The translations under genes were made by a program, and so were the position numbers. Of a stretch of 64,000 bases of DNA, positions 240 to 51,671 are shown piece after piece. The notes under the pieces were generated by a model. It did no database searches and was not told the DNA's origin. It worked only from the letters and a program-made list of their open reading frames with translations. The DNA lies in contig OZ287759.1 of NCBI GenBank assembly GCA_965649765.1, positions 23,374,001 to 23,438,000 of the forward strand, given 5' to 3'. How positions within the stretch are numbered: the first letter of the stretch is position 1; each line of letters starts with the position of its first letter. The DNA is from Bispira polyomma (taxonomy: Eukaryota).

Positions 240-344
240 TGACACACTCAGCTCCTGTGGAACTGGGTACTTTGCCACTGCCACAAGCCGTACAGGTCTC
301 AAAGTCATCACATACGGTACAGTCTTCCATGGCAGTGCCACAGG
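240..344 (-). CDS. Repeat exon type [35 protein letters not shown] (last exon in window)
   Basis: 105 bp, ag...gtaagt. Downstream intron matches the ones at 6960-7200 and 19160-19398, so the array continues beyond the edge. Confidence 0.88.
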
Positions 345-3300
345 CTTTTAAAACAAAAATTATACATAGAGTCCTGACAATATATTAATGGTAAATGTAT
401 TACATGAAATGCTTGCAACTAATATAACATCAACAACAAAAAATCAGCATCACCTCTTTAGGTTGTATATTCATGTTTTGACATGGATATAGTTGACAGT
501 GTAATAACACTAATGTTAAAACTTCTTCAGTGGTATGATGTTCCCCGGTAGTGCAAATTGTGATCGAAGTCTAAAACAAGGTGCAGTAGTACAGTATGAC
601 TGAAATAGAAAATTTATACTCAATCTATAAAAACCTATGAACATTCAGCGGAGATATTTAGAGGCTACTGTGACTTTAAATTATCTGGAACTAGTAAGTC
701 AGTCTGGTGAAAGTGGAGAGAATATTTTATCTTAATAGATTGCTAAGAGATATCATACAAAGTAAAATTGTTGGTAAATATGAATAGCCGTAAACTTAAG
801 GACAATTAATTTAAATGTAATACAGAATTTGATCATTAGCCATTGGAGGTGTTGAATAAGAGGGGTTATATGAGAGCATGCTTTTGATTTACTTCAGTTT
901 TTTATCTCTTCCTGTCCAATACCATACAGTTGAAAACTGCAATGAGCAAGACACCTTGCAACCAAGGCATTTGCAACAGCAATAAAATTTTCAAATGTGA
1001 GATGGCGATATGTTTTTATAATAGCAGCTTAACAGAAAAATGATAAAAACATGGAGATTGAAAGTGTCTCCCAGATTGTAACATCATTGGCACAAAAATA
1101 CAATTGCAAAGGTTATTTATCTGAAAAATATTTATGTCATTTTCCTCTGTGCTTTCAAAAAGTAGTTTTTCTCTTGATTGAACTTTAATTTCCTAATTTT
1201 TCGATTTCCTAATTTTTCGTTTTCTTATTTCTTAGGTAGTTCAGCTAATTAGCTTGTTTCATTCATATCGATCTGCTAATGCTATTTTTATATTGTATTT
1301 CACATTTTTAATGTGTTTTTTTGATGTGAGACATCCAGTGAAGCCGAACAACAAAATCAATAACCCAATAGAGAAGTAAAAAAAGCATAGCGAAGTTCGT
1401 AATGAAGGATGTGGGGGTGCCAAGGGGGGAAATTTAGGGGATTAATGAGTTTGAAGAGATAAATTTTAAGTGATTTCCTGAACCAAAAAAATGTTTATTG
1501 TAATCTAAACTAAACAGGGAGACTATTCCATAACATAAAGGGTAGCAATTAAGAAAGGTCTGGATCCTGTCCTTGTGGTAGATTTCTATTAAGTTTATTT
1601 GTACTTACTAACACACATGTCTCCTGTAGAACTGGGTACTTTGCTGTCGCTACAAGCCGTACAGGTCTCAAAGTCATCACATGCGGCACAGTCTTCCATT
1701 GCAGTGCCACAGGCTTTTAAAACAAAAAATATACATAGAGTCCTATCAATTTATTAATTGTAAATGTATTACATGAAATGCTTGCCAGTAATATGACATC
1801 AACAACAAAAAATCAGCATCACTTCTTTAGGTTGTATATTCATGTTTTGACATGGATATACTTGACAGTGTAATAACATTACTGTTAAAAGTTCTTCAGT
1901 GTTATGATGTCACCCAGTAATGCCAATTGTGATTAAAGTCTAAAACAAGGTGCAGTAGTACATTATGACTGGAAAACAAACTTTTGTACTTAATCTATAA
2001 CAAGAGGAAAGTGACCTTGCGGTCACAAATCTCGGAGACATGTATCTTTTTCTCAAGCTGTCTACCTAAAAGTATACTAATATTATCTGTCAATGTATAA
2101 GTTACAACCAAAAAAAATCTGTCTACCGGTCTACCTATAACCTAAAATACAATTGTCAATATATAAGTTACGAAAAAGGAAATTATTTGACAACCTTTGA
2201 CAAGTTAAAAAAATTTTTTTTTTTAATTTTTTGATTGAAGGTAATTTTTTATGGTTTAGGGTTTAGGGGAGTTAGCCATCATTCTTTAGCCTATGTATCT
2301 CTTACACTTAAAGTTAGGGTTTAGGTTTAGGGCTTAGGGGAGTTAGTCATGATTCTTTAGCCTAAATATCTGTTACACATAAAGTTAGATATAGTCCCCT
2401 AACCCCTTAAGCCTAAAATAATTTCGACCTGACAGCTTATGTTTCTTAAATAATTAAAAAATTAGTCTACCTGTCGACCTAACTATATTATTATACAGCT
2501 AGTCCATAATTTAAGGATAAGACCCTGACATACCACAGAATACATGCAATATAAAAAAAACCCATGGCTACATTGTTCACACTTACTAATACAAGAAGTG
2601 TTAAAAACAGTATGAACTTACTAACACATTCCGCTCCTGTAGAACTTGTTACTTTACTACTGTCACAAGCTGTACAGGTTTGGTGGTTAGTGCAGAATTA
2701 ATAAGCCAATAGAGAAGTCTAAAAAGCATTGCGAAGGTTGTAAAGAAGGACAGGGGAGCGTACAAGGAGGAAATTAAAGGGGTAAGTGAGGTTAAAGAGA
2801 TAAGTTTTGCTTTTTCCTCAACCCAGAAAGTGTTTCTAGTAATTTGAGCTCAACAGGCAGACTCTTCCATAACATAAGGGCAACAATTTAGAAAGATCTA
2901 GATTCAGCTCTGTTGGTATGTTTTTATTTAGTTTAAATGTACTTACTGACACACTCGGCTCTTGTAGAACTGGGTACTTTGCTGCTGTCACAAGCCGTAC
3001 AGGTGTTGTAGTCAGTGCACATGTTACAGTCTGTCATTGCACTGGCACAGGCTGTGACATAAATAGGCAACACAAAACTATCATGATTAGTATTACTGAA
3101 ACGTTTAATTCATAGCATCCTGTTGATATATCATCCTCAAAGCTACTCATTTTCTGAAAAAGATAGTCCTGCAACAAAACTTTGGTTGTCATTAGTACAC
3201 AATTCATTTAATTTACTTTAATTTTCACCCTTGTATACATGTAGTTAATTATATATTTTAGACTTTAATTAGACTTTAATTTGCAGGATAATTTTCCAAT

Positions 3301-6300
3301 TTGTTTTAATTAAATTTTTTTTTTACAAAAATTATATTGTTGTTTTAAATCATAGTTACAGTGTTGATGCCTTGACAGATATTATCCCTGATACTGACAT
3401 TAGCCTTCAACTGGCATTTAACCTTGACCTGACACCGCTTGACCTGACATTAGAATTGGCTTGTTATTAGACTCGGCTTAATATATACCTTGACCTGGCA
3501 TACACTTATACACTTGACATTAACCTTGACCTGACATCCTTGACCTGACATTAGACTTGGCCTGGCATTATATTTGAGACATTAACCTTCACCTGACATT
3601 AACCTTGACCTAACATCCTTCACCTGACATTAGACTTGACCTGACATCCTTGACCTGACATTAGATTTGACATAGCATTATATTTGAGACATTAACCTTG
3701 ACCTGACATTAGATTTGACCAGACGTTAGACTTAACTTGATATACACCTTGACCTGGCATTATACTTGGCATTAGATTTGACCTTTAAACTTGACTTCAG
3801 TATTTTATACAATTATTAGCGGTCCAATGTTTATACCTGCTGTGACATAAAAGACAAACACAACTTTTCTAATAAACTGAAAAATGGTACCATCATCATA
3901 TATATTACATGTACTTACTTGTTTTCACTGAAGTTTAGGGAAACCTCTATCACTTGTCTTGAGAGTCGTAATCTATGCACTGTTCAATAAGTAATTTCAA
4001 TGCAATCATATAGATAAGCTGACAAAATATTTTTATGCTTGTAAATGTAGATAGCATTTTAACAGCGTCTCCATGGCACTCATCTTGATTCCAGGACTTA
4101 GCTGACAGTTATTGCCATCTCTGGCTTGACATTGACAACAAGAATGTTGAAGCTACTTAGTCATTGTAGAATTGTAATTTGGAAACTTAGGTATCAGACA
4201 GCTGACTTTGTTCTGATGGATCCCTCAAAATAAAGATTTACCCCAACAAGGGACGAATTAGATACAATTTTAATAAGAAGTGTTAAAAACAGTATGAACT
4301 TACTAACACATTCCGCTCCTGTAGAACTGGGTACTTTACTGCTGTCACAAGCTGTACAGGTTTGGTAGTCACTACACGTGTTACAGTCTGTCATCACACT
4401 GTCACATGCTTTAACAAACACAAGATATGTCTTCATATATGTCAAAATCTACTAAATCTAGGTACAATTTCATAATATGACTTTCATTTTCTAATATCTT
4501 AGGTAGTCCAGCGAACAAGATTGCTTCATATATATTAATTAACTGCTTTTGTATATTATATTTTGTATTATTAATATACCATATTGATGCGAGACATCTT
4601 CTATAGTGCAATAACAGAATCAATTAACTAATAAAGAAGTCCTAAAAGCATAGTAAAACTTGTAAAGAAGGATATGGTGTACAGAGAGCAAATTAAGGGG
4701 GTAAGTGAGTTTGAAGAGATACGTTTAAAGTTTTTTCCTAAACCCAGAAAGTGTTTCTAGTGATCTAAGCTCAACAGGGAGCCTATTCCCTATCATAAGG
4801 GCAGCAATTGAGAAAGATATCGATCCAGAATTCTAGGTAGGTTTCTCTTTAGTCGATTTGTACTTACTGACACACTCGGCTCCTGTAGAGCTGGGTACTT
4901 TGCTGCTGTCACAAGCCGTACAGGTGTCAAAGTCATCACACGTGTTACAGTCTGTCATCACACTGGCACAGGCTTTAACAAACACAAGATATGTATTCAT
5001 ATATGTCAAAATCTACTAAATCTAGGTACAATTTCATAATATGACTTTCATTTTCTAATATCTTAGGTAGTCCAGCGAACAAGATTGCTTCATATATAAT
5101 AATTAACTGCTTTTGTATATTATATTTTGCATTATTAATATACCTTACTGATGCGAGACATCTTCTATAGCGCAATAACAGAATCAATTAACTAATAAAG
5201 AAGTCCTAAAAGCATAGTGAAACTTGTAAAGAAGGATATGGTGTACAGAGAGCAAATTAAGGGGGTAAGTGAGTTTGAAGAGATACGTTTAAAGTTTTTT
5301 CCTAAACCTAGAAAGTGTTTCTAGTGATCTAAGCTCAACAGGGAGTCTATTCTCTATCATAAGGGCACCAATTGAGAAAGATATCGATCCAGAATTCTAG
5401 GTAGGTTTCTCTTTAGTCGATTTGTACTTACTGACACACTCGGCTCCTGTAGAGCTGGGTACTTTGCTGCTGTCACAAGCCGTACAGGTGTCAAAGTTAT
5501 CACACGTGTTACAGTCTGTCATCACACTGGCACAGGCTTTAACAAACACAAGATATAACGTCATATATGTCATAGCCTAGGTACATATTTAAAAAAACAT
5601 TTTTAAACTTAAAATTTCTAATTTCTTAGGTAGCTCAGTCAAAAGGCTTGCTTTATACATATTAATCAGGAAATGCTATTTTTAGAATTTTTTTTGTATT
5701 TTGTTTTAAATATATCTTATTGATGTGAGGCATCTTCTAAAGTGCAAAATCACAATCACTTAACCAATAAAGAAGTTCAAAGAGCATAGCAAACATTGTA
5801 AATGAGGATGTTGTGGTGTACAGGGAGGTAATTAAAGGGGTAAGTGACTTTAAAGAGGTAAGGTTTAAGTTTTTCCTGAACCCAGTAAGTACAGGGGGGG
5901 ACAGCAATTCGTGGTGGACAGCATTTCACTATAAATGTGGTTATTACACCTAATCACTGTATAATATTCATTTTAAAGGAATTATTTTCGCATTATAAGA
6001 TTTATATAACATACACATGCCTACACCACAAATATATAGAATACTGTCTGCCTAAATAAATTTTAAATGAATTTAAAGTACCAACACAGCTAAATAAACA
6101 GTAGTACTGCACAAAATTTGAGGTTGATGATTAGACAGTACTAATGATTGGCTATTGGGCTGTATTAGGGTTTCTTTTCTGTTTCTCATATTATGTATCG
6201 TGTACATAAACTATTTCATAATATAATTATTATTGTTAATAAAAGTTATACGTAATATTTTAATCTAAATATTTACTATTGTTTGAAAATGGCGAAATGC

Positions 6301-9300
6301 TGTCCACTTCTAATCTATATTAACCTAGTGACTTTACTTTCTAACTTCTGGTTAAAATTCATCGGAAGTACCTTAATGTATCTAGATACGAGTCAGATTT
6401 ATATGCAATGGAATGACCTCCACAAATTACCAGTTAATTGCCTCAACATTATTTCCTTTTGCTCATATTTGTTAAATTTCCGTGAATTTCAAGCGAATCG
6501 CTATCCCCCCTTGTATTTCCAGTGATCTAATCTCAACAGGAAGACTATTTCATAACATAAGGCAGCAATTGAGAAAGGTCTAGATCCAGCACACCTGGTA
6601 TGTTTTTATTTAGTTTATTTAATTTAGTACTTACTGACACACTCTGCGCCTGTAGAACTGGGTACTTTGCTGCTGTCACAAACCGTACAGGTCTCAAAGT
6701 CATCACATGTGTTACAGTCTGTCATCACACTGGCACAGGCTTTAACAAACACAAGATATAACTTCATATATGCCATTGTCCAGGTACATATTCACAGACA
6801 TTTTAAGACTTTCATTTTATAATTCCATATATACGTAGTTCAGGCAAAAAGCTTACTTCATGCATATTAATCAGCCAATGTTATTTTTGCAATTTTTGTA
6901 TTTTGTTTTAAACATACCTTATTATTGCAAGGCATCATTTAAAATGCAACATCACAATCAATTAACCAATAGGGTAGTCCAAAAAGCATAGCAATGGTTT
7001 TAAGGAAGGATGTGATGGTGTACAGGGATGGAATTAAGGGGTTAAGTGAGTTCAAATAGATAAGCTTTTCCTTAACCCAGAAAGTGTTTCCAGTGATCTA
7101 AGCTCAACAGGGAGACTATCTTATAACATTAGGGCAGCAATTGAGAAAGCTCTAGAACCAGCCTGCTTGGTAGGTTTTTATTAAGTTTATTTGTACTTAC
7201 TGACACACTCAGCTCCTGTGGAACTGGGTACTTTGCCACTGCCACAAGCCGTACAGGTCTCAAAGTCATCACATGTGTTACAGTCTGTCATAACACTGGC
7301 ACAGGCTTTAACAAACACAAGATATAACTTCATATATGCCATTGTCCAGGTACATATTCACAGACATTTTAAGACTTTCATTTTATAATTCCATATATAT
7401 GTAGTTCAGCCAAAAAGCTTACTTCATGCATATTAATCAGCCAATGTTATTTTTGCAATTTTTGTATTTTGTTTTAAACATACCTTATTATTGCAAGGCA
7501 TCATTTAAAGTGCAACATCACAATCAATTAACCAATAGGGTAGTCCAAAAAGCATAGCAATGGTTTTAAGGAAGGATGTGATGGTGTACAGGGATGGAAT
7601 TAAGGGGTTAAGTGAGTTTAAATAGATAAGCTTTTCCTTAACCCAGAAAGTGTTTCCAGTGATCTAAGCTCAACAGAGAGACTATCTTATAACATTATTA
7701 GGGCAGCAATTGAGAAAGCTCTAGAACCAGCCTGCTTGGTAGGTTTTTATTAAGTTTATTTGTACTTACTAACACACATGTCTCCTGTAGAACTGGGTAC
7801 TTTGCTGTTGTCACAAGCCGTACAGGTGTTGTAGTCAGTGCACATGTTACAGTCTGTCATTGCACTGGCACAGGCTGTGACATAAATAGGCAACACAAAA
7901 CTATCATGATTAGTATTACTGAAACATTTAATTCATAGCATCCTGTTGATATATCATCCTCAAAGCTACTCATTTTCTGAAAAAGATAGTCCTGCAACAA
8001 AACTTTGGTTGTCATTAGTACACAATTCATTTAATTTACTTTAATTTTCACTCTTGTATACATGTAGTTAATTATATATTTTAGACTTTAATTAGACTTT
8101 AATTTGCAGGATAATTTTCCAATTTGTTTTAATTAAATTTTTTTTTTACAAAAATTATATTGTTGTTTTAAATCATAGTTACAGTGTTGATGCCTTGACA
8201 CTGATATTATCCCTGACACTGACATTAGCCTTCAACTGGCATTTAACCTTGACCTGACACCGCTTGACCTGACATTAGAATTGGCTTGTTATTAGACTCG
8301 GCTTAATATATACCTTGACCTGGCATACACTTATACACTTGACATTAACCTTGACCTGACATCCTTGACCTGACATTAGACTTGACCTGACATTATATTT
8401 GAGACATTAACCGTGACCTGACATTAACCTTGACCTAACATCCTTCACCTGACATTAGACTTGACCTGACATCCTTGACCTGACATTAGATTTGACATGG
8501 CATTATATTTGAGACATTAACCTTCATCTGACATTAACCTTGACCTAACATCCTTCACCTAACATTAGACTTAACCTGACATCCTTGACCTGACATTAGA
8601 TTTGACATGGCATTATATTTGAGACATTAACCTTGACCTGACATTAGATTTGACCAGACGTTAGACTTAACTTGATATACACCTTGACCTGGCATTATAC
8701 TTGGCATTAGATTTGACCTTTAAACTTGACTTCAGTATTTTATACAATTATTAGCGGTCCAATGTTTATACCTGCTGTGACATAAAAGACAAACACAACT
8801 TTTCTAATAAACTGAAAAATGGTACCATCATCATATATATTACATGTACTTACTTGTTTTCACTGAAGTTTAGGAAAACCTCTATCACTTGTCTTGAGAG
8901 TCGTAATCTATGCACTGTTCAATAAGTAATTTCAATGCAATCATATAGATAAGCTGACAAAATATTTTTATGCTTGTAAATGTAGATAGCATTTTAACAG
9001 CGTCTCCATGGCACTCATCTTGATTCCAGGACTTAGCTGACAGTTATTGCCATCTCTGGCTTGACATTGACAACAAGAATGTTGAAGCTACTTAGTCATT
9101 GTAGAATTGTAATTTGGAAACTTAGGTATCAGACAGCTGACTTTGTTCTGATGGATCCCTCAAAATAAAGATTTACCCCAACAAGGGATGAATTAGATAC
9201 AATTTTAATAAGAAGTGTTAAAAACAGTATGAACTTACTAACACATTCCGCTCCTGTAGAACTGGGTACTTTACTGCTGTCACAAGCTGTACAGGTTTGG

Positions 9301-12300
9301 TAGTCACTACACGTGTTACAGTCTGTCATCACACTGTCACATGCTTTAACAAACACAAGATATGTCTTCATACATGTCAAAATCTACTAAATCTAGGTAC
9401 AATTTCATAATATGACTTTCATTTTCTAATATCTTAGGTAGTCCAGCGAACAAGATTGCTTCATATATATTAATTAACTGCTTTTGTATATTATATTTTG
9501 TATTATTAATATACCATATTGATGCGAGACATCTTCTATAGTGCAATAACAGAATCAATTAACCAATAAAGAAGTCCAAAAAGCATAGTGAAACTTGTAA
9601 AGAAGGATATGGTGTACAGAGAGCAAATTAAGGGGGTAAGTGAGTTTGAAGAGATACGTTTAAAGTTTTTTCCTAAACCCAGAAAGTGTTTCTAGTGATC
9701 TAACCCCAACAGGGAGTCTATTCCATATCATAAGGGCACCAATTGAGAAAGATATCGATCCAGAATTCTAGGTAGGTTTCTCTTTAGTCGATTTGTACTT
9801 ACTGACACACTCGGCTCCTGTAGAGCTGGGTACTTTGCTGCTGTCACAAGCCGTACAGGTGTCAAAGTCATCACACGTGTTACAGTCTGTCATCACACTG
9901 GCACAGGCTTTAACAAACACAAGATATGTATTCATATATGTCAAAATCTACTAAATCTAGGCACAATTTCATAATATAACTTTCATTTTCTAATATCTTA
10001 GGTAGTCCAGCGAACAAGATTGCTTCATATATAATAATTAACTGCTTTTGTATATTATATTTTGCATTATTAATATACCTTATTGATGCGAGACATCTTC
10101 TATAGCGCAATAACAGAATCAATTAACTAATAAAGAAGTCCTAAAAGCATAGTGAAACTTGTAAAGAAGGATATGGTGTACAGAGAGCAAATTAAGGGGG
10201 TAAGTGAGTTTGAAGAGATACGTTTAAAGTTTTTTCCTAAACCCAGAAAGTGTTTCTAGTGATCTAAGCTCAACAGGGAGTCTATTCCCTATCATAAGGG
10301 CACCAATTGAGAAAGATATCGATCCAGAATTCTAGGTAGGTTTCTCTTTAGTCGATTTGTACTTACTGACACACTCGGCTCCTGTAGAGCTGGGTACTTT
10401 GCTGCTGTCACAAGCCGTACAGGTGTCAAAGTCATCACACGTGTTACAGTCTGTCATCACACTGGCACAGGCTTTAACAAACACAAGATATGTATTCATA
10501 TATGTCAAAATCTACTAAATCTAGGTACAATTTCATAATATAACTTTCATTTTCTAATATCTTAGGTAGTCCAGCGAACAAGATTGCTTCATATATAATA
10601 ATTAACTGCTTTTGTATATTATATTTTGCATTATTAATATACCTTATTGATGCGAGACATCTTCTATAGCGCAATAACAGAATCAATTAACTAATAAAGA
10701 AGTCCTAAAAGCATAGTGAAACTTGTAAAGAAGGATATGGTGTACAGAGAGCAAATTAAGGGGGTAAGTGAGTTTGAAGAGATACGTTTAAAGTTTTTTC
10801 CTAAACCCAGAAAGTGTTTCTAGTGATCTAAGCTCAACAGGGAGTCTATTCCCTATCATAAGGGCACCAATTGAGAAAGATATCGATCCAGAATTCTAGG
10901 TAGGTTTCTCTTTAGTCGATTTGTACTTACTGACACACTCGGCTCCTGTAGAGCTGGGTACTTTGCTGCTGTCACAAGCCGTACAGGTGTCAAAGTCATC
11001 ACACGTGTTACAGTCTGTCATCACACTGTCACAGGCTTTAACAAACACAAGATATGTATTCATATATGTCAAAATCTACTAAATCTAGGTACAATTTCAT
11101 AATATGACTTTCATTTTCTAATATCTTAGGTAGTCCAGCGAACAAGATTGCTTCATATATAATAATTAACTGCTTTTGTATATTATATTTTGCAATATTA
11201 ATATACCTTATTGATGCGAGACATCTTCTATAGCGCAATAACAGAATCAATTAACTAATAAAGAAGTCCTAAAAGCATAGTGAAACTTGTAAAGAAGGAT
11301 ATGGTGTACAGAGAGCAAATTAAGGGGGTAAGTGAGTTTGAAGAGATACGTTTAAAGTTTTTTCCTAAACCTAGAAAGTGTTTCTAGTGATCTAACCCCA
11401 ACAGGGAGTCTATTCCCTATCATAAGGGCATCAATTGAGAAAGATATCGATCCAGAATTCTAGGTAGGTTTCTCTTTAGTCGATTTGTACTTACTGACAC
11501 ACTCGGCTCCTGTAGAGCTGGGTACTTTGCTGCTGTCACAAGCCGTACAGGTGTCAAAGTCATCACACGTGTTACAGTCTGTCATCACACTGGCACAGGC
11601 TTTAACAAACACAAGATATAACGTCATATATGTCATAGCCTAGGTACATATTTAAACAAACATTTTTAAACTTGAAATTTCTAATTTCTTAGGTAGCTCA
11701 GTCAAAAGGCTTGCTTTATACATATTAATCAGGAAATGCTATTTTTAGAATTTTTTTTGTATTTTGTTTTAAATATATCTTATTGATGTGAGGCATCTTC
11801 TAAAGTGCAAAATCACAATCACTTAACCAATAAAGAAGTTCAAAGAGCATAGCAAACATTGTAAATGAGGATGTTGTGGTGTACAGGGAGGTAATTAAAG
11901 GGGTAAGTGACTTTAAAGAGGTAAGGTTTAAGTTTTTCCTGAACCCAGTAAGTACAGGGGGGGACAGCAATTCGTGGTGGACAGCATTTCACTATAAATG
12001 TGGTTATTACACCTAATCACTGTATAATATTCATTTTAAAGGAATTATTTTCGCATTATAAGATTTATATAACATACACATGCCTACACCACAAATATAT
12101 AGAATACTGTCTGCCTAAATAAATTTTAAATGAATTTAAAGTACCAACACAGCTAAATAAACAGTAGTACTGCACAAAATTTGAGGTTGATGATTAGACA
12201 GTACTAATGATTGGCTATTGGGCTGTATTAGGGTTTCTTTTCTGTTTCTCATATTATGTATCGTGTACATAAACTATTTCATAATATAATTATTATTGTT

Positions 12301-33300: not shown

Positions 33301-36300
33301 AGCCAGAGGCCTACATTTTATTTCACAGTGTATGTCTTCAAATATCTTCTATAAACTAGAGTTGTCTTATGATTTAAAAAAGAAAATTACAATATCCCCA
33401 TATATGACAATACATTTTTGAGATGTGGTTTAAACATATTTATTTCCAATAGGCAGTATCTATAGTGTTATATTAAGCCGATTGGATTGTCCGGAAGACC
33501 TACTTACAGGAAATACATTATACGTTTGTGTCACTTTCATGGTCCTTCTTTAGTTCATTTTTTTCCATGTAAAAGAGCACACAATTCCAATACATAAAAC
33601 ATTAGAGCAAATGGTGTTTACTGTTAATTACATTTGGAAATTACTGGAATCGCCAAGTGTCAGCTCTATAGTCTTGCATGCAGGTCATTGCTATTTTGTT
33701 TGAAAGAGATCACCATGCAAAAGACAGGTTGTTAAAATTGTATTCATCTTCAACCTCTAGTTAACAAACAGTTAAAAATAAACGACAGAAATGATCTGGG
33801 ATCCATCCCAAGAAGATACATACTGGCCTGGATAATGTAAACAGCAGCTTTAACTTGGTTCTGCTGTAAACTTATAAAGACGCATACTACTGCTTGAATT
33901 TGATCCAGGCTTGTATTGGATCTTGAGATTAATATTCCGGTACACTAACAGTTGAGCTGAAGTGGAAACCCCAGAAGCCTGAGTGTCTAATGCGGTGATA
34001 CACACAGATATTATATGCCTCTTCCTTACAAAGACCTGACCTCAGGTCTTATACTACTACCACATTAACCCTACTAAGTTGCCTGGCTTATGAGATGGGG
34101 ATCTTGCCACTGAACTCCACCATGAAAACAACAGAGATAACTTATCTCTAAGAATTTCACTTATCTCCAAAAAACAATGCTAAAACTAGAATAAGAGTTT
34201 CCAGGAGGAGGTCCAGTGTCCATGGTATGTAAATGGAACACCTCTTCACTCATAGACTGGCTTAATGACCCAATAACAAATTTGGATGAAAGAGTGTAAG
34301 ACTGTCCTACTTAACAAATGAAAAGATAAATTCTGCTCCAGTTTTAGAATATATTGTGTTATTGCAGCCTTTGTTTTTTATACGGCAGTACGATACTGCA
34401 CTCTTTGTATTGATATTTGATTGTGGTTGGTAATATACCTCCTACCTCGCTTCTCTCCTTTCTTTTAGTAACCTGAAGAGAGGTAATGGACTTTATGTTT
34501 CCTCTGTTAAACCCACCAAGAAAGCTAGATCCAGAGCTTTGTCCATGGCAGCCCACCATGTTATGGAACAATCTCCCAGTTGAGCTAAAATCACTAGAAA
34601 CACTAGGAAACATCTTTTCAAGATCGTTTCTTCCACTTTAGTACCCTCCTGTACACCCCCACACACCATTCCTTATGACTTGGCTATGTTTATGGATAAG
34701 GCAATTGGTTAACTGATTCTGTTGTTGTACTTAAGAAAATGCTTAGCATTAATAAAGCACGTTAAACATGCATAATGATAATAATATCAATAGCTTACCC
34801 CCAGCTGATACATCTGTGACAAGCATGAGTGAACAACCGTCGCTGGCGAGTCCCATGGCAGTTAGAGTTTCCCCAGGACTAGCTACCACGGAATCTGTTT
34901 TAATGCAAGCTGAACCATCCTTGGCTACCATATAGCCACGCAAGACTGCAATACAAAATGTAACTTCTTGCACCATCACCCGTGTAAGTAATCAATTTGA
35001 ATTCGTACAAAAACAAGTATTGCACAATAAGATATGGTAAATGAAAGGACAAAAAAGGAAAAAAAAGCAGAAAAACATATTTCTGCAACACATGTACATT
35101 TGGCAAAACGTACTAATTGATCATATTCATAATTTCACTATTATTGTAAACTCTGTAGTTTTTACTATCCTAACATGTCTGTAACGACTTGGTTATAAAC
35201 AGCAGAGTGTGTACTATTTTTTATCACTGATAGCTGAATTAAGTTCTGTTTAAGGTAAAAATGTGAACATGTACATACTTTTCGAGAGCACAGTAGTGTA
35301 GGTAATCTTTTTGTAGGCGGAGATGAGCACAGATAAGCCGCTATACATATTATGTAAAATTAGTTTCGATCATCACCCATGGTGTTTAATGCACATATCA
35401 TTTTATTAGCAACATACTTGATTTACAAGAAGCTTATTCCCAGGTGTGGTAGGAGGTATTAGAGAAATTAGAGGATACTGTCTTTCCGCCTATGAAATTG
35501 GCTGTTCCATCTATGCAAAGTATACCTCCTGAAACTTGTCGAGGTAAGTTTTACAGACAGAAAAAGATGACAATAATACTATGACAGATTTACAGTAAAT
35601 AGGCAGAATTAGTCAGAAATAGGCGGAAACACGATTACAGAGACAGAAGAATTACAGTAGAATTTGGTACTACACAGAGATGGGCGGAAGCATTTTACCG
35701 CCCTTTTCTAATTTGGTGAGGCCAAAATTTTTAACATATTCAAAACCATTGCATAATAATGGAAGGAAGGAAGCTAAACTTAGGGGTAGTCATAGATAGG
35801 GATCCTGGCGGTAAAAGGCAATTTTCAAAACGTCTCTAACCGCGTATCCCTATCGCCATTGTGAGCCTAGGGTTTAAATAGCCATGTTGGCTTTTAAAAG
35901 TCAAATATTTATAAAAACTTGTAAGCAAATATACTCAAACAGCATCAGTCTTTCTTAATAATCAACTAGCACTACAACTTTAAAGATTAAATACATCCAG
36001 CCATAAATTAGCCTTTTATCACTGCATTTAGCACTAAAACTATCATTCTCCTATTTGAGTTTAGTTGGGTTGAACGTCCCTTTTAACAGCTTGGGTTATA
36101 TCAGGACATCCAGATTTATTGTGAAGCACTGTAAACCACCAGACTACAGCAAGTACCTGGTAAACTCTCCCACACGAACAGGCACGAACAGCATTCAAAC
36201 CCACATTGGTGAGAGACTAGCTATTATCAATAATACTAAGTACCTGTTTTTGATTTGTTTTGTCAAATTTCATTTCTAGAACATAAATTTTAAAAATGAA

Positions 36301-39300
36301 AATACAACACTACTTACTTGGATTATTAACAACATCTCCAGCATCTATTCTTTCCACTATAAGAAACTGTAAAACAAAATAGAATGTCACATTTGGATCC
36401 TTGACCGAGTATTCTGCCTCCAGTGACGGCTTATTAAACTGATGTATAGCCGTTTTGGCGACAGAGCGGCTACCATAAGCAAAACGTTGTAAATCAAAAA
36501 TCGGCATATATAGAGATAGAATCTGGTTAAAATAAATATACCCTCATATCTTATACATGATAAGGTAGCCAATTTTCTGTTACTTCATGCCAACATGCCA
36601 ATTAATATAAAATAAATTAAACTTTAACCACAAACATTGGAACAACTCTGTCGGCCATTTTATGCCAGGCTAAATTTACAACGTTTTGCTTATGGTAGCC
36701 GTTTGCCCCTTTTGGTGATTCAGCCATCAAAATTATTGCAAGGAATCTCGCTTAATAGGGACAGATTAATCAGTCTATGTTGGATTCCAACTTAGGATTT
36801 CATCAGTTCAAATTAAGACTTGTTAGTGTATTAATTCAGCTTTGTGTTTGATATTTATTATATTGCTTTAATTAAACTCATAAAATTCTTTGTTTTTGGT
36901 ACACAGGGTTGCACAAATTAGAGAGTGGACCTTTGTTAAGAACATACAGTAAATGTTCTTTTTGTTGCACTAATCAGGTGAAATGGCCTTATAAACCACC
37001 AAATACATAACACTGAACTACAGAGGACGGCACGCCACTTCACGACAGTTATTTACACGCCAAACACGATACTACACTACATAATCCATATAAAAGTACT
37101 CTCCACAGCCAAGTGGGGGAGAGGGGCAGTATAAAACAAGGTAAGAACTAATCACTATACGGCATGACATGACGCTTTTATAGATTTCTGCAAGGTAAAT
37201 TGCAGTGTCGTGCTGTGCAGTATAGTGTAGTGTCGTGCTGGGGGGCAGTCTGAATAATCACTATATGTTTTCTTATTTCGATATAATTGTAGTGTTGTGT
37301 CATGTTGTGTCGTCGTTGGTCTATAAGGCCCCTTAGACATGTAACAGTGAGAGGTACATGTATATATATATATGTATCATGTAATTTTTAATATTTACTT
37401 TAGATTGTAAATATAGACACTGACTAATATGTATTGAAAGTTTATTATTGCTGATTGAAATCGTGAATAAACCATGCTCTATTTGATAGTATAGCCTAAT
37501 AAAAACAGACTAATGCCCTGTAATCATAAACATAATCACAAATGTATTGCTGAAACAAATGCACATTATTAGTACACTAACACATAATGAGACAGATGTT
37601 GTTTGTTTCAGTATTCCATTATAACATGTGTAAAACAGTAATTGTTGTAACTAAGAGATTATTTTATTAATTAACTCGTAAAAATAATTAAAATAAACTC
37701 TCAGTTTTTTACATACTTGCAGTTAGTTCTGCCGTACCAGGTCAGAAGTTCAGGGGCCCATAGTAACCAGGGCAAGTATAATTTAAGATGTGGTTTAAAA
37801 CATTCATGGTTAATCTAAAAGGTTAGTTCTAGGGCTATGTACATACTGGGTGGTCTAAGGTCACTATCACACATTAAGTTTATATATATATTTTGCACTG
37901 AAAAATAATAACAATTAAAGGAAGGTTTTGTACATGATGCATACCCTTTCAGTTTTTTATTATAATTTTTCAGATATGGATGAATATTTCACCGATAGCT
38001 GTACCAGCTAAAGTTAATGTAGCATATGCAGTGTCTGTTAATATATGTACTTGATATTTTAGCTATCAGTTCAGCCAGTGCTATTCTTGTTTTTGCCTTT
38101 GTATTTCCCAACTGCTACAAAAGCATGACAGACGTTGTTTGTTTACAGGTTGCTATGGTAATATGTGCAAGTCACAAAGCGTTACAACTAGGTAATTCAA
38201 TTATTAATCTGCATTCTAATTGAATGGTAATATTTTTCAAGGGTCTTCATGTTTTTTCTTCAAACAACCACAGATTTTATTTTCATTTGCCTAAACAAAT
38301 TTCTGAATAAGTTTGTGTGTGGCAAACCTGGGTTTGTATTTACCAAAGGCCTTGCAAATTATTATTTTATATTTGGATGCCAATACCACATTCATAGATT
38401 TCCTCAAATTAAAAAAAAATTATACTGCATCAATATTACAAAGTCGTTGTATTAGCTAACATATGTATTAAATAGTACTTTCAAGCAGATTGACTCTCAT
38501 CATATAGACAGAGCTTAAGTTATGGACTAATATTGAGGATATCCGGCGGTCTAATTGCACATTTTCATGGACGGTCGACTCTAAACACCACATCTTGAGA
38601 GAATGGGGTTGGTCGAATCATAAATGGGTCATAATGGGTAATTATGTTTGTGAACCGGTCTAATCCAGAGAAACCATTGCATAAACGTCTGATCATCTGC
38701 ATAGATCTCTTATGGTTGGGAAATAATCTGTCACAAATGGGTCCTGACCTTGTGAGAAAATCTCAGATCTTGCTTGGTCGGAACATAAACTGGACATATC
38801 CGGCTGAGGGCATATCTGGGGCACAGCTGGGTGTGATCGTATTGTACACTTAATTATTGTGACATTAATATTAATTGTATGTTATGTGGGGTTCACAATT
38901 TCACGACCTATAGAGCCCTTTACTCCAGATTTCAAGATCTGGGCATAAACTGAAGAGATCGGTACGATCATGTGTAAAACTTGGTCGGCTCTAAAAGTTA
39001 CATTTGGAGAGAACTCGATAGGTCGGAGCTTAATCAGGGCATAATCTTTGGGACAGAACACATCATGTTGATAGCTTAATCTTGTGTGATCTGGAACAAA
39101 TGTTGCATAAATGTGTGATGGTCTGCTTAGATCGGGTATGGTCTGGGCATAATCTGGTATGAACAAAGCATAGTCTGGTAATAATCATAGGAGGTCTGGT
39201 AAAAAAAATGGGCATGTCCTGGGCATAAACTAGGCATGATCTGGTGAGATTGTATCATACACTTGGTAAGACGTAAGATTAATGCATTAATGATATGCAA

Positions 39301-42300
39301 ATGAGCTTTTTCACTCACTCTCTCCCGAACAGTCGAGAATTTATGATCTTGTTCTCCTCTGTATACACTCTGTTTCGTATACCCAAGTGGATAATAAAAT
39401 TACATTAAGTTACCTGTTATTTAAAGGACGAGGATACATCTGAACAAAAAAAAAATACATTACATATATATACTGCAATCACATCTAAACAAAACACTGT
39501 TTATTGTTTATAACAAAACAAAAATACATTTTATACTTATAGTTGATGTAACCATTTCCAATATTGTCTCTACATTAATTATCTATATCTAGAAATAGCT
39601 ACATATTTCCTAATCAATAGCATTTAAAGTATGAGATTTAAAGCTAAAGGGACATAAATTAGATCGTATCAAACTGATATTTGCATATACAATGTTTTTT
39701 TTTTTTCGAAAACAAGAGCTTGTTTCCATATCAGACCTTCCTTGTACAAGTTTTTATCAGTCGCAGCCTGTTATTGATTTCATTCTAAAAAGGGCGCCAC
39801 AATCTTAGAAAATGTGTAAGACCTTAATGGATTGGTTGGGAGCAATCGACATGTCCTAAGTAAGGGGTTGTCAGATTTGCCTGAGTATATAGTGGCCATA
39901 CCAGCGTTAGTGTATTTCACACTCTGCTCTCGTGACTTTTTTAAGAGACAATTCTTGCTCAGGACTATATATAACTTTTTGAAGTAATATTACCTTTGAT
40001 GTGAAGAAAGAAAATTTGTGTTATATTCATCAACTATTAGCCCTTTTAAAATGAGTCTATTAATATTATTTTTAAATCTATGCCATTTAAATGTATATCC
40101 TAATTAAATAGATTGATTGATTGTGGGTTAATGTTTAGGCCATACAACGGGCAGTTTTACAATTTATCTGTCAATGTCAATGAGTTATACAATTACAACA
40201 ACATAATAGTTAATATAATATATATTGTCCTGGCGTATATGGTATTCTTGTGCATTGATTATTCAAATTCATATTGAACAGGCGTAAATATTTATTCATA
40301 TGGATAAATATTTATTCATATGGATTATGATATTTAGATTACACATGCCTTGTGAGTCAAAAAGTATCTTGCAAGATATGCAGAAAATATTTGGAATGAA
40401 AAGAACAACAAAATTATGAACTCATTAAAAAGATAACTTTTTTACGATGTTTTCAAATTAGTGTGCCTGAAAATGTCTAAAATCTAGAATCCCCCCCCCC
40501 CCCTTTCCGCTATTTTGAAAAGTAGTACAAAATTAAAATAGAAGTCCCTATATGAATATTTTATATTATTTTCAGGTTCATAAAAAATAATGAAATAAAT
40601 GGTAAGTGAAAAGATGCAAAAGTAATTTTATTAGAGAGAACTAGAGAAATTCTCTAGAATTAATATTTACTACTGGCGATTTGTTAATTAAAATATTACA
40701 TTAATATGTTCTAATTTCCACTAGGAATCAATTTTCGATATGAACCCCAGTCATAAGCTAATATTAATTCCTGGTTAAACAATGTCTAACCAATACCGTA
40801 TGGTCTGAGCTATTAACCCTTTCAACACCTAGGTTGCTGGCTAGTAGTTCGGGCCGTGGCGGCCTAGTGGTTAGCAAGCATTGCACTTCACAATCACTGG
40901 TCTCTCACCTCTGGGCGGCGTGAGTTCGAATCCCGTTGATGCCTATGTGGGAAAGGTGGTAGTTCCTTACCGTGGGCCGCTGGTTTCAGTGCAGAACCTT
41001 GATCAACTGTATGCAGTGTTTCCTCCAGCGTTTCCAACTACCTGTCCCAATATACGCTAAACAGGTACTAGAGTGGACGTTAAAATATCCAAATTCAATT
41101 CAATTCAATTGGCAAGCAGTCCACTGCATTAGTTACTCCCAGAACCTATGTCTGTCGGCAAGCAGTCGACACCCCCAAAAATAGGATTTTTTTTTTTCAT
41201 TTTGTTCCTCGCAACAGGTAATTATTATTACGGCAGAATTCCCTGTTCCATAAAATTATACTTTAGGCTGTTATTGAATGCCGGAAGTTGTCTGTGGTGT
41301 GTGTTTTAGTGACTTTAGTTATCTGTAACCTGTTCCTGAAAAAAAAATCCTGCATTTTTTGGAGATAGTTTTCTCTTATGATGAAAAGGATTAATTAGGT
41401 TGTTGCCTCATGTTTTCTTCACTGATAACTGGGTGGTTGGTAGTTGTTTTTTTTAATAAAGATTTGATCAATACTAAAAGATGATAAAGCAATGTTCAAT
41501 CCAATTAATTTATGATCGGAAACTGCAAAAACTAATCACTTTAAAGCTTCCTGTACAATTTTATTTAGTAAAAATTGTTAGATACAGTACATAATATTAT
41601 CATAGTCNNNNNNNNNNNNNNNNNNNNNNNNNNNNNNNNNNNNNNNNNNNNNNNNNNNNNNNNNNNNNNNNNNNNNNNNNNNNNNNNNNNNNNNNNNNNN
41701 NNNNNNNNNNNNNNNNNNNNNNNNNNNNNNNNNNNNNNNNNNNNNNNNNNNNNNNNNNNNNNNNNNNNNNNNNNNNNNNNNNNNNNNNNNNNNNNNNNNN
41801 NNNNNNNNNNNNNNNNNNTGCCCTTTCTGCATTTCATTTTCCACATTTGACAATGTCTTTGAAATTGACAATATCAAAGACCCACATTTTAAAATGTCAA
41901 AACAACGATCAAGACTGTTTTCAGAGTGTGGGTGAACTTTTTCTAAAATATCAAATGGTGTTGTACCTGAAACAAAACTGACAGAAAAGTAGACGTATAA
42001 AAGATATGTAAGTTTTATAATCACCAATGTGTGTCTATGTTTTTTTCTGTTTATGTAAAAATTTGATTCTCGCTTCATTTTAGGCTTATTTCCAGCGTCT
42101 CCACGGTCATGACCTAATATTTTAACAATGATTACCATGTCTCACATGCCTTAGAACCCGCTGGAATGGAGATTAAGCACTATGGAAGTTAAATTCAATA
42201 ATATTATTGTTTATCTTAGTATTTATTTTACACCAGGTAATATAATTGTTTATCTTAATATTTATTTTACACCATGTTCACATATATCCAGGTAACTGCA

Positions 42301-42546
42301 AATTTAACAGGTAACCGCAAATATATATAAATTATATATATATAAATCAGAACTTTTTTGCTCACAAATACTCCAGTTATCTAAATTATAAAAGTATGTT
42401 TTCCATAAAAAAAAACCCATAATATAGAAGCAAACAAGAATTAAGCAAAAGAATCATATATTGATCCTTTTCTTAAAGTGTTTAATAACAATTCTTTTAA
42501 AAATCGATCTTACCAGAAACAAAACAGCCACTTGCAACTTTGCCAT
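240..42546 (-). CDS. Multi-exon gene span, 3'-incomplete: secreted or cell-surface protein with signal peptide, N-terminal domain and at least 29 tandem 35-aa CxxC-rich repeats (furin-like/VSP-like Cys pattern)
   Basis: 33 exons with canonical AG/GT ends and compatible phases (0, then all 1) join into one stop-free frame of 3574 nt. No stop codon is reached inside the window. Confidence 0.88.
1609..1713 (-). CDS. Repeat exon type [35 protein letters not shown]
   Basis: 105 bp, ag...gtaagt, phase 1-1. Confidence 0.88.
1999..2500. mobile_element. Putative non-autonomous Helentron/DINE-like insertion with TTTAGGG-like repeats (copies at ~14227 and ~21182)
   Basis: Homology to the A-type intron stops at aacaagag, followed by hairpin gtgacc-ttgc-ggtcac (2011-2026) and (T)TTAGGG repeats at 2254-2340. 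Right end undefined. Confidence 0.4.
2622..2694 (-). pseudogene. 5'-truncated half-exon [24 protein letters not shown] (3' end replaced by F-type sequence)
   Basis: Acceptor missing; two donors in tandem (acttac at 2581 and 2616 on +). Confidence 0.72.
2947..3051 (-). CDS. Repeat exon type [35 protein letters not shown]
   Basis: 105 bp, cag...gtaagt, phase 1-1. Confidence 0.88.
3370..3797. repeat. Intronic minisatellite, core ccttgacctgacatta
   Basis: Many degenerate ~13-17 bp units. Confidence 0.9.
4304..4408 (-). CDS. Repeat exon type F
   Basis: 105 bp, ag...gtaagt, phase 1-1. Confidence 0.88.
4868..4972 (-). CDS. Repeat exon type C
   Basis: 105 bp, ag...gtaagt, phase 1-1. Confidence 0.88.
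5432..5536 (-). CDS. Repeat exon (C variant) [34 protein letters not shown]
   Basis: 105 bp, ag...gtaagt, phase 1-1. Confidence 0.88.
5892..6513. mobile_element. 622-bp Tc1/mariner-type MITE
   Basis: TIRs cagggggggacagcaattcg / cgaatcgctatccccccttg (3 mismatches in 20), TA duplicated on both sides, interrupts the LINE tail. The homologous site near 24590 is empty. Confidence 0.9.
6635..6739 (-). CDS. Repeat exon type E
   Basis: 105 bp, ag...gtaagt, phase 1-1. Confidence 0.88.
7201..7305 (-). CDS. Chimeric repeat exon (5' E, 3' A) [34 protein letters not shown]
   Basis: 105 bp, ag...gtaagt, phase 1-1. Confidence 0.86.
7770..7874 (-). CDS. Chimeric repeat exon (5' D, 3' B) [34 protein letters not shown]
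   Basis: 105 bp, cag...gtaagt, phase 1-1. Confidence 0.86.
8192..8733. repeat. Intronic minisatellite, longer variant
   Basis: Same core, ~110 bp longer than the 3.4 kb copy. Confidence 0.9.
9239..9343 (-). CDS. Repeat exon type F
   Basis: 105 bp, ag...gtaagt, phase 1-1. Confidence 0.88.
9803..9907 (-). CDS. Repeat exon type C
   Basis: 105 bp, ag...gtaagt, phase 1-1. Confidence 0.88.
10367..10471 (-). CDS. Repeat exon type C
   Basis: 105 bp, ag...gtaagt, phase 1-1. Confidence 0.88.
10931..11035 (-). CDS. Repeat exon (C variant) [34 protein letters not shown]
   Basis: 105 bp, ag...gtaagt, phase 1-1. Confidence 0.88.
11495..11599 (-). CDS. Repeat exon type C
   Basis: 105 bp, ag...gtaagt, phase 1-1. 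Confidence 0.88.
11955..12576. mobile_element. 622-bp MITE, same insertion carried by block duplication
   Basis: Same TIRs, TA TSD and flanks as 5892-6513. Confidence 0.9.
12698..12802 (-). CDS. Repeat exon type E
   Basis: 105 bp, ag...gtaagt, phase 1-1. Confidence 0.88.
13269..13373 (-). CDS. Repeat exon type E
   Basis: 105 bp, ag...gtaagt, phase 1-1. Confidence 0.88.
13837..13941 (-). CDS. Repeat exon type [35 protein letters not shown]
   Basis: 105 bp, ag...gtaagt, phase 1-1. Confidence 0.88.
14813..14885 (-). pseudogene. 5'-truncated half-exon [24 protein letters not shown]
   Basis: Donor intact; acceptor and first 32 bp missing. Confidence 0.75.
15133..15237 (-). CDS. Repeat exon type [35 protein letters not shown]
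   Basis: 105 bp, cag...gtaagt, phase 1-1. Confidence 0.88.
15562..15993. repeat. Intronic minisatellite, shorter variant
   Basis: Same core. Confidence 0.9.
16499..16603 (-). CDS. Repeat exon type F
   Basis: 105 bp, ag...gtaagt, phase 1-1. Confidence 0.88.
17063..17167 (-). CDS. Repeat exon (C variant) [34 protein letters not shown]
   Basis: 105 bp, ag...gtaagt, phase 1-1. Confidence 0.88.
17627..17731 (-). CDS. Repeat exon (C variant) [34 protein letters not shown]
   Basis: 105 bp, ag...gtaagt, phase 1-1. Confidence 0.88.
18087..18708. mobile_element. 622-bp MITE, same insertion carried by block duplication
   Basis: Same TIRs, TA TSD and flanks as 5892-6513. Confidence 0.9.
18830..18934 (-). 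CDS. Repeat exon type [35 protein letters not shown]
   Basis: 105 bp, ag...gtaagt, phase 1-1. Confidence 0.88.
19399..19503 (-). CDS. Repeat exon type [35 protein letters not shown]
   Basis: 105 bp, ag...gtaagt, phase 1-1. Confidence 0.88.
20794..20898 (-). CDS. Repeat exon type [35 protein letters not shown]
   Basis: 105 bp, ag...gtaagt, phase 1-1. Confidence 0.88.
21769..21841 (-). pseudogene. 5'-truncated half-exon [24 protein letters not shown]
   Basis: Donor gtaagt intact; the first 32 bp and the acceptor are missing. Confidence 0.75.
22094..22198 (-). CDS. Repeat exon type [35 protein letters not shown]
   Basis: 105 bp, cag...gtaagt, phase 1-1. Confidence 0.88.
22523..23063. repeat. 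Intronic minisatellite, longer variant
   Basis: Same core, ~110 bp longer than the 15.6 kb copy. Confidence 0.9.
23570..23674 (-). CDS. Repeat exon type [35 protein letters not shown]
   Basis: 105 bp, ag...gtaagt, phase 1-1. Confidence 0.88.
24134..24238 (-). CDS. Repeat exon type [35 protein letters not shown]
   Basis: 105 bp, ag...gtaagt, phase 1-1. Confidence 0.88.
24713..24817 (-). CDS. Repeat exon (5' A-type, 3' E-type) [34 protein letters not shown]
   Basis: 105 bp, ag...gtaagt, phase 1-1. Confidence 0.88.
25790..26025 (-). mobile_element. L2/CR1-like 3' tail with no adjacent exon
   Basis: Homologous to the array intron tails but not followed by acttac plus exon. Confidence 0.7.
26762..26950 (-). 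mobile_element. L2/CR1-like LINE 3' end (second family)
   Basis: Minus strand reads [24 protein letters not shown]; similar to 51.7-52.1 kb and 62.1-62.6 kb. Confidence 0.7.
27550..28950 (+). mobile_element. Decayed, 5'-truncated L1/Tx1-clade LINE ORF2
   Basis: RT motifs [22 protein letters not shown] and [11 protein letters not shown], and C-terminal CIRC...HIFVTC zinc knuckle; many stops and frameshifts. Confidence 0.9.
29705..29940 (+). mobile_element. L2/CR1-like 3' tail, same family as array introns, opposite orientation
   Basis: aaagctttctcaatagctgc...tctcccagttgagcttag...[12 protein letters not shown]. Confidence 0.7.
30125..30229 (-). CDS. Exon 5, divergent first Cys repeat [34 protein letters not shown]
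   Basis: ttgtcttgtag acceptor, A|gtaagt donor, 105 bp, phase 1-1, 6 Cys, ends in ECV like the array exons. Confidence 0.88.
31395..31694 (-). CDS. Exon 4, [20 protein letters not shown]...[30 protein letters not shown]
   Basis: Acceptor ttattttccag, donor G|gtacac, 300 bp open frame, phase 1-1, coding-like composition. Confidence 0.85.
32683..32795 (+). mobile_element. Degenerate tRNA-derived SINE 5' part, interrupted by a MITE
   Basis: A-box-like cagtggtt, B-box-like gttctaatcc, and ccttggacaaggtg shared with the 46953 SINE. Confidence 0.45.
32796..33181. mobile_element. ~380-bp MITE-like repeat, copy 1
   Basis: Imperfect TIRs agaccgagtattctg / cagattattcagtct; second copy at 36401-36777. 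Confidence 0.7.
34505..34760 (+). mobile_element. L2/CR1-like 3' tail, same family as array introns
   Basis: accaagaaagctagatccagagc...ttatggaacaatctcccagttgagct. Confidence 0.7.
34799..34945 (-). CDS. Exon 3, [48 protein letters not shown]
   Basis: Acceptor ttttgtattgcag, donor G|gtaagc, 147 bp, phase 1-1, GC-richer than flanks. Confidence 0.85.
36318..36366 (-). CDS. Exon 2, [16 protein letters not shown] (end of signal peptide, likely cleavage IDA|G)
   Basis: Acceptor tctattttgttttacag, donor A|gtaagt. 49 bp, phase 0 to 1, exactly bridging exons 1 and 3. Confidence 0.8.
36401..36777. mobile_element. ~380-bp MITE-like repeat, copy 2, ~33 bp from the exon 2 acceptor
   Basis: Colinear with 32796-33181. 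Confidence 0.7.
36985..37330. mobile_element. MITE, possibly PIF/Harbinger-type
   Basis: TIRs ggccttataaacca / tggtctataaggcc with subterminal 5-bp repeats in mirrored orientation. Confidence 0.65.
40851..41110 (+). mobile_element. tRNA-derived SINE, family 1
   Basis: A box tggcggcctagtgg, B box gttcgaatcc, (ttcaa)n tail; three copies in window. Confidence 0.9.
41608..41818. other. Assembly gap (211 N) in predicted intron 1
   Basis: Run of N. Confidence 1.
42514..42546 (-). CDS. Exon 1 coding part, [11 protein letters not shown] (signal peptide n/h region)
   Basis: aaaattATGGCA start, phase-0 donor CTG|gtaaga. Joins exon 2 to give a ~20-aa signal peptide. The intervening intron contains an assembly gap. 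Confidence 0.75.
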
Positions 42547-42841: not shown

Positions 42842-42864
42842 CTTTTATAGAAATTCGCCCCCAC
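42842..42864 (-). promoter_or_regulatory. Candidate TATA box (TATAAAAG, 42849-42842) with adjacent GC-box-like gtgggggcgaa
   Basis: Consensus TATA on the gene strand ~300 bp upstream of the ATG, in a locally GC-richer patch. Confidence 0.45.
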
Positions 42865-50900: not shown

Positions 50901-51671
50901 GAAGTAAAAAATAGATTTCTTCCGAATTTTAAACAACTGTAACTAGCACTGGTTTCGCCCACCAGTAAATCTACTTGATATGACCTACACAATGTGTTGA
51001 CATCGATGTTAAACACAATTCAATCAATCAATGCCCACTGTGACACAAAACGTGGTGAAAGTGTTGTTGAAACCAAACTATAATAAATTAATTTAACATG
51101 AATTCGATCTTCACATATTGGTCAAATCTGCTGATTACTTGGGCACTGACCAAAATTTTGTTATTATGTAGTTCTATTGTATTGTGGTTTTCTAATGTGC
51201 CTTATTGACGCCAGGCATCTTCTAAATAATTGTCTTTATCAGAATCAATAAACCTGTAATCATGATCATAATACACAGTCAGGTGGTCCTCAATCAATAG
51301 GCAAAGGCATGTTCACACCTTTTACAAGAATGTTATATTCCAAATGTAAGAGTCTTATATCAAATAATGTTCACAAATAATTGAAGCAGCCTTTGAAAGC
51401 TCAGCCACAAGTACCCAACATCACACGATTATTTTGTTTATCAAGTAACAGTTTAGATCATTCATATTAAAAGTTGACAAAAGTTTTGTGCAAAGTGTTT
51501 TATATGGACTGTGAGAGTAACAATGATACCACAGCTTTATTTAATATAAGAAATAGTTGTTAATTATTGAATTAACTGGACATGACCTCACCATATTGGA
51601 TTTGGTGTATGAACACCACTGAATAACACTTAATAATTATAATATAATAATTTATAATAATTGAAACATTT

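Follow-up and report, generated by a model that had tools for sequence, protein, structure and literature searches.

Gene model

The window analysed here is a 64,000-nt stretch of the Bispira polyomma genome (assembly GCA_965649765.1, contig OZ287759.1; G000:C12:23374001-23438000, genome size 1.035 Gb), and its minus strand carries most of a long gene for a predicted surface protein consisting of a signal peptide, a head of ~150 aa, 40 six-cysteine repeats and a tail with a hydrophobic end. A preliminary description had proposed a hidden gene of 33 exons in one open frame, encoding a signal peptide and an N-terminal head on an acidic, Cys-rich stalk, and all of this held: the 33 window exons have AG and GT sites throughout and join into a single frame of 1191 codons with no stop. 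With a further 15.5 kb to the left, the whole gene model has 45 exons and 1611 aa, with canonical splice sites and an open frame. It contains 11% Asp, 28% Ser+Thr and 15% Cys and has a net charge of -190; its 244 cysteines are made up of 40x6 in the repeats and four in the head, with none spare. Folding and database searches of the spliced model were made exon by exon, and exons were joined only for the frame and composition checks.

A six-frame scan of the window found exactly 28 C-x6-CxxC-x5-CxxC units, all on the minus strand between 24817 and 240. The 28 array exons that encode them are, as first described, each exactly 105 bp long with six invariant Cys and an invariant KVPSST, and are bordered by AG and GTAAGT. 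At the other end of the gene, a scan of 36.4-64 kb turned up exon 1 as the sole candidate for an ATG, a hydrophobic stretch and a donor, and a 30-nt phase-0 first exon like it is found in three homologs from another animal (L021, L024 and L061). The assembly gap lies inside intron 1 and hence cannot shift the reading frame (Table 1).

Because the gene was read from genomic DNA alone, the main support for the model is the match in exon order across species described below, and we consider it very probable that the gene is spliced and expressed as drawn. The sequencing runs X1 and X3 are likewise genomic and agree with the assembly. The genomic origin of the model, and the inability of short-read contigs to count repeats, could also fit a pseudogene or an array inflated by mis-assembly. 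However, the repeat units differ by many consistent substitutions and indels in an ordered higher-order pattern, frame and cysteines are conserved, and the layout is shared across species, which makes this explanation highly improbable.

Table 1 Features of the gene. Positions are window coordinates, except for the left-hand terminal exon, given in G000:C12 coordinates.
Feature	Position	Strand	Remark
TATA-like box TATAAAAG	42842..42849	-	~300 bp upstream of ATG; consensus match only
Exon 1: ATG and first half of signal peptide, phase-0 end	42514..42546	-	Matches homolog layout
Assembly gap (N)	41608..41818	.	Wholly within intron 1, >690 bp from exon 1
Exon 2: remaining signal peptide and linker, phase 0 to 1	36318..36366	-	34-nt phase 0-1 exon at same place in homologs
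Exon 3: first third of head (putative foil alpha, two invariant Cys)	34799..34945	-	Homolog comparison
Exon 4: last two thirds of head (putative foils beta and gamma; C-L..C..(Q)xW-YF motif)	31395..31694	-	
Exon 5: first, head-proximal six-Cys furin-like repeat	30125..30229	-	Up to 71% identity in homologs
28 homogenised 105-bp phase 1-1 exons, one six-Cys furin-like repeat apiece	240..24817	-	Higher-order repeat
Dead exon remnant: 3' ~80 nt and donor kept, acceptor lost	21763..21841	-	Array intron
Dead exon remnant, same ancestor	14807..14885	-	Array intron
Dead exon remnant, same ancestor	2612..2694	-	Array intron
Chimeric exon: nt 1-66 like exon 15237, nt 67-105 like exon 1713	7770..7874	-	Crossover within exon
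Chimeric exon: 5' part like exon 18934, 3' part like exon 344	7201..7305	-	
Terminal exon encoding GPI-type signal	G000:C12:23358583-23358489	-	Read from sequence

tRNA and Rfam searches gave no match anywhere in the window. Two minus-strand stretches (51630-52147 and 62297-62587) resemble, by eye, decayed 3' ends of long interspersed nuclear element (LINE) reverse-transcriptase open reading frames, the first without a Pfam match.

Left extension and predicted membrane anchor

At least 29 modules ending at position 240 had been counted at first. The repeats are real, but the array continues to the left of the window with five further near-identical repeat exons (23373776 down to 23368255), then six diverged repeats of 99-114 bp (23367485 to 23359535), so that 11 more repeat exons bring the total to 40. 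Reading this left neighbourhood for a transmembrane or glycosylphosphatidylinositol (GPI) tail had been suggested, and a terminal exon of GPI type is indeed found there. By inspection, this exon encodes Ser-Ser-Ser, a spacer and a 19-aa tail (mean hydropathy 1.9) directly before the stop, and the features of a GPI protein are present: an N-terminal signal, a small-residue omega candidate, a spacer, a hydrophobic tail reaching the stop and no cytoplasmic tail. A GPI-type last exon is kept in four homologs (L021, L023, L024 and L061), with a spacer, S/N-(S/N)-(S/A)-V-(V/I)-(E/V)-K-x-S, that is similar in all of them and in the gene studied. The protein very likely carries a GPI anchor, with the omega site probably in the Ser-Ser-Ser run. 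Of the earlier proposal of a secreted or surface protein, the surface half stands, with the terminal exon conserved in homologs, but not free secretion.

Minisatellites also occur in the introns that surround the diverged repeat exons, at ~8-13 kb to the left of the window (L008 and L009). One of them, a 66-bp unit at ~23361000-23362600, looks like a copy of the acceptor and opening bases of the exon that follows, in the manner of a mirage.

Stalk repeats

All six cysteines are invariant in a profile of 49 repeats. The best PDB matches of this profile (34 columns) are the furin repeats of R-spondin-1 and -2 (E 0.003-0.07), in line with the likeness to furin-like Cys-rich domains noted at the outset. 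The corresponding Pfam family, PF15913 (Furin-like_2), reached a best E of 0.036 in 1/49 repeats, which falls short of the cut-off, single exons being too short for a firm assignment. In R-spondin, the furin repeats form beta hairpins that are knotted by disulfides and follow one another in an extended shape (PMC3937510). No match to Pfam VSP or immobilisation-antigen families was found among the 49 repeats.

The stalk had been described as either disulfide-bonded or metal-binding. Disulfides are the likelier, given the even number of cysteines in every module, the extracellular location of the protein and an R-spondin furin repeat as the best solved match, and a disulfide-bonded, furin-like fold of the repeats is accordingly one of our firmer predictions. 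The density of CxxC motifs, weak Pfam matches of single repeats to ZZ and zinc-ribbon families (best E 1.4e-5, 2/49) and the reported binding of Zn and Fe by Giardia VSPs (10.1101/2022.03.07.483299) would fit metallothionein-like or zinc-ribbon-like metal binding through CxxC thiolates, including those created by splicing at the junctions. However, a secretory signal and a GPI tail imply an oxidising space, and the even Cys count and the disulfide-bonded R-spondin match point the same way. The junctions also speak against it: a third CxxC had been described at every one, and the full model has 32 CVTC and 2 CITC, but some junctions have three residues between the cysteines. Metal binding by the repeats thus appears unlikely, and as an explanation of the stalk we rate it as very improbable. 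By analogy with such modules we take the pairing to be C1-C3, C2-C4 and C5-C6, which would close every repeat exon on itself and leave the splice-made C-V-T-C as just an inter-module link; most simply, the junction CxxC would be the usual link from the last Cys of one furin-like module to the first of the next.

Head domain

The model of exon 4 is all-beta. Among the fold matches of the head, a trefoil fragment with two foils (3ogf) ranks first, ahead of R-type lectins, FGFs and MIR domains; exon 3 modelled alone is uninformative (predicted local distance difference test score 52), and its fold matches are meaningless. Compared with a profile of ricin-B foils drawn from three loci (L037, L040 and L041), every putative foil aligned in register, and column-shuffled controls scored as well in 0/60, 0/60 and 1/60 cases. 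The three source loci are long single open frames (481-691 aa) with ricin-B domains and are probably intron-poor GalNAc-transferase-like genes. A QLW motif is present in 5/11 homologs of exon 4; it occurs only in the last foil of some relatives, with none in foils alpha and beta, and the same position reads MFW in the gene studied. No head exon matched Pfam Ricin_B_lectin (PF00652), and 0/51 genome matches to that family fall on a head locus. The Gal/GalNAc-binding Asp after C-L is absent from foil gamma, where K, L, T, M, R or Q stands instead, and C-L-D is found only in two paralogs, in foil alpha. Taken together, sequence and models suggest that the head is probably a beta-trefoil that descends from ricin-B (R-type) lectins and has diverged strongly, and sugar binding is a candidate function that we put forward tentatively.

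Motifs in the head had prompted consideration of a C-type lectin domain, which was rejected, given the all-beta exon 4 model and the lack of any such domain among the fold or Pfam matches. Pfam and PDB sequence searches with the head exons gave nothing, and the ESM Atlas, searched by features and by shape, returned only rows without a name or with a low score. A further search for homologous proteins was blank; being limited by length and word sharing, it missed even known fragments and carries little weight. The head found no name in Pfam, PDB, the Atlas or the protein database, and the protein, unrecognised at first, still has no characterised full-length match in these searches.

Relatives and family size

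A phmmer search with exon 4 against 1.84 billion proteins gave 11 matches (E down to 5e-21), all of them single-exon fragments without a name. Their sources are a long-read assembly of another animal (ERZ22147071) and several marine metagenomes, including that of a marine biofilm. In the other animal, L021, L023, L024 and L061 have exon 3, exon 4, exon 5, more repeats and the homologous GPI-type last exon in the same order, with candidate signal exons upstream. They have only 3-4 repeats per gene, compared with 40 here, a rod ~10 times as long.

The gene is not a singleton in its own genome either. A profile search found at least 27 copies of exon 4 without stops, clustered at 43.5-44.3 Mb on C12 and on C6, C7 and C13, and several of these are preceded by exon 3 and followed by a repeat. 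At least 150 matches to the repeat module were scored, and C7 and C11 carry large arrays of it that are independent; both counts are lower bounds. Among the exon 4 sequences of the other animal (L021, L023, L024, L061 and L062), pairwise ratios of non-synonymous to synonymous change (dN/dS) are 0.5-1.0, as expected for a binding domain under weak or diversifying constraint, and diversifying selection is possible.

Several other loci vary the plan. At least eight head paralogs cluster at G000:C12:43.56-44.29 Mb; in those read, no CxxC exon lies within 1.5 kb after exon 4, so that the tail of some may be different or missing. At G000:C13:32.277-32.294 Mb and C6:73.306-73.332 Mb, CxxC exons are flanked on both sides by a head copy, an arrangement that may represent tandem genes or one multi-head protein. 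Segmental copies at G000:C7:24.34-25.04 Mb (L016 and L018) contain at least five large arrays of the same type of CxxC exon; some of their exons have an in-frame TGA, three of them in L016, and no head match was found near these arrays. In paralog L034 (91-243 and 1459-1752) an extra intron splits exon 4 between putative foils beta and gamma, in keeping with the trefoil reading of the head. In the other animal, L021 has a stop in the second repeat exon (13622), and in L062 neither repeats nor a tail were seen up to 10 kb from the head, which has transposon genes close by; we read the L021 stop and the repeat-less L062 as signs of birth and death in the family.

Origin of the array and selection on it

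The introns of the array follow the order ABCDEFGBBHDFFGBBBBCFFGBBHDEFBHIJ, in which the higher-order unit contains a variable number of 564-bp B units, and near-identical blocks reach 4.7 kb at 98% identity. A minisatellite of CCTTGACCTGACAT, variable in length, sits in the C- and H-type introns (3486-3762, 8336-8697, 15680-15957 and 22641-23028) and has been copied together with the higher-order unit. A single dead, 5'-truncated exon has been copied four times along with the array. Diverged ends around a homogenised middle are the expected mark of unequal crossing-over, by which the array, judged from its sequence, has grown between symmetric exon-plus-intron units; it offers a clean natural record of this process at the level of exons.

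The array had been described as free of stops and indels. This is right for the full exons, with no stop and no indel in the 33 near-identical ones compared with 8-10 gaps per 150 nt between introns of different types, but three 5'-truncated dead copies lie in the introns of the window. Furthermore, the 33 exons amount to only 24 distinct nucleotide sequences (20 peptides) through recent block duplications, so their intactness is not 33 independent tests. Exon types are 83% identical, compared with 55-57% for flanking intron. Taking every copy as separate and ignoring relatedness among copies, alleles in the array occupy 20/61 possible synonymous and 37/236 possible non-synonymous changes (ratio 0.48, p=0.006), and none alters a cysteine (0/42 possible changes; 0/37 amino-acid-changing alleles, p=0.0007). 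A dN/dS near 1 among exon types would have spoken against the gene and was not seen. The value of about 0.5 supports selection acting on the protein and translation of the repeats, with no bearing on whether their number is adaptive.

The number could therefore be a by-product, with a gene that works as proposed below, symmetric exons that duplicate freely and selection that purges only changes to cysteines and frame. The near-identical blocks, chimeric exons, dead remnants carried along and diverged ends around a homogenised middle all fit such neutral growth, as do the dN/dS of only ~0.5 and the in-frame stops in other arrays of the module (L016). The intactness of the 33 exons against gapped introns speaks for translation, not for a selected length. 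We regard neutral length as close to evenly balanced, an assessment separate from that of the other alternatives, and an adaptive value of stalk length as somewhat short of that.

Every repeat exon is of phase 1-1, so that any skip keeps the frame, and skipping could in principle yield many isoforms of a variable surface antigen, an animal analogue of VSP or immobilisation-antigen variation. However, symmetric phase simply lets exon duplications survive, the 33 exons encode 20 little-differing peptides under homogenisation, and variation in the family sits in the head; this explanation is improbable.

Proposed function

On balance, and with modest confidence, we favour a role in recognition or adhesion, in which an acidic disulfide rod would keep a GPI-tethered binding head at a great distance from the membrane. 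The signal peptide would direct the protein into the endoplasmic reticulum, where the C-terminal hydrophobic tail would be exchanged for a GPI anchor. The 40 furin-like modules, with three disulfides each, would form an acidic, semi-rigid rod (net charge ~-190) presenting the single ~150-aa head away from the membrane, where its ligand may be a glycan or protein carried by microbes, matrix or another cell. The stalk would have been lengthened from an ancestral 3-4 modules through unequal crossing-over; by our own estimate it would, if stretched out, span very roughly 70-90 nm, compared with under 10 nm. The contrast between 3 and 40 repeats among relatives makes selection on reach directly testable.

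The rod itself could instead be the working part, as a protease-resistant coat, mucus, a tube or mineral matrix or a Ca2+ binder, much as VSPs and immobilisation antigens coat protists, with a head that merely anchors or oligomerises. Its charge and its Asp, Ser+Thr and Cys content suit this role, the module has expanded independently in many other arrays, and homologs are present in a marine biofilm metagenome. Nevertheless, relatives with no more than 3-4 repeats still have both head and GPI tail, which marks the head as the conserved core, and head paralogs are numerous and diverse; a structural coat is unlikely. As an extension of the proposal of a tethered binding head, marine worms could have an undescribed, expanded family of beta-trefoil receptors with GPI tethers, represented by at least 27 heads in the present genome. 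Diverse heads would give ligand specificity, and stalks of 3-40 modules, tuned by unequal crossing-over and perhaps exon skipping, would set the reach through the glycocalyx. This extension is speculative and rather doubtful.

Comparison with known systems

Head-on-stalk GPI proteins, furin-like repeats and trefoil lectins are each already known. In the literature, of which subscription papers were thinly covered, no description of the head family or of the combination in animals was found. The novelty is tempered by a module that is common in the genome, a junction motif that is probably ordinary and a putative function.

Furin-like repeats (R-spondin Fu1/Fu2; PCSK5 and EGFR-type Cys-rich domains) share the C-x2-C-x5-C-x2-C core and spacing, the extracellular location and the extended rod, whereas the gene studied has 40 copies of a 33-37-aa unit with six cysteines, each on a phase-1 exon of its own, and is strongly acidic. 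The VERL gene of abalone likewise contains a tandem array that unequal crossing-over has homogenised and whose end repeats have diverged, but its repeats are ZP-N domains of unrelated fold, largely in one exon.

Annelids make R-type lectins, whose role in these animals is still unclear (PMC8399747). R-type (ricin-B) lectins such as annelid EW29 and PnL and mussel SeviL share with the head a probable three-foil fold and a Cys pair in foils alpha and gamma, and with its relatives a QxW-like motif before the last strand. In contrast to them, the head has no PF00652 match, mostly lacks the canonical Asp, has a shorter Cys-to-Trp spacing and has QxW only in the last foil of relatives; PnL and EW29 consist of lectin domains alone and are not tethered by GPI and a stalk. 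Should the head prove to be a trefoil lectin, annelid recognition biology would gain an entire receptor family that is as yet unannotated.

Ciliate immobilisation antigens, Giardia VSPs and Entamoeba Igl share the signal peptide, tandem periodic-Cys repeats and a multigene family in tandem clusters, and the ciliate antigens also share the plan of signal, repeats and GPI signal (PMC3341644). The gene studied differs in coming from an animal, in giving every repeat its own exon and in having a globular head apart from the repeats. No sequence match was found; the likeness is probably convergent. The Entamoeba Gal/GalNAc lectin (HgL-LgL) combines a beta-trefoil sugar-binding chain with a Cys-rich partner and an elongated arm (PMC12948311); it has two chains and a different repeat type, and the analogy is functional only, with no claim of homology. 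Were the proposed receptor family real, it would represent an animal innate-recognition or settlement-cue system convergent with both the CxxC surface coats of protists and the lectin-on-arm design.

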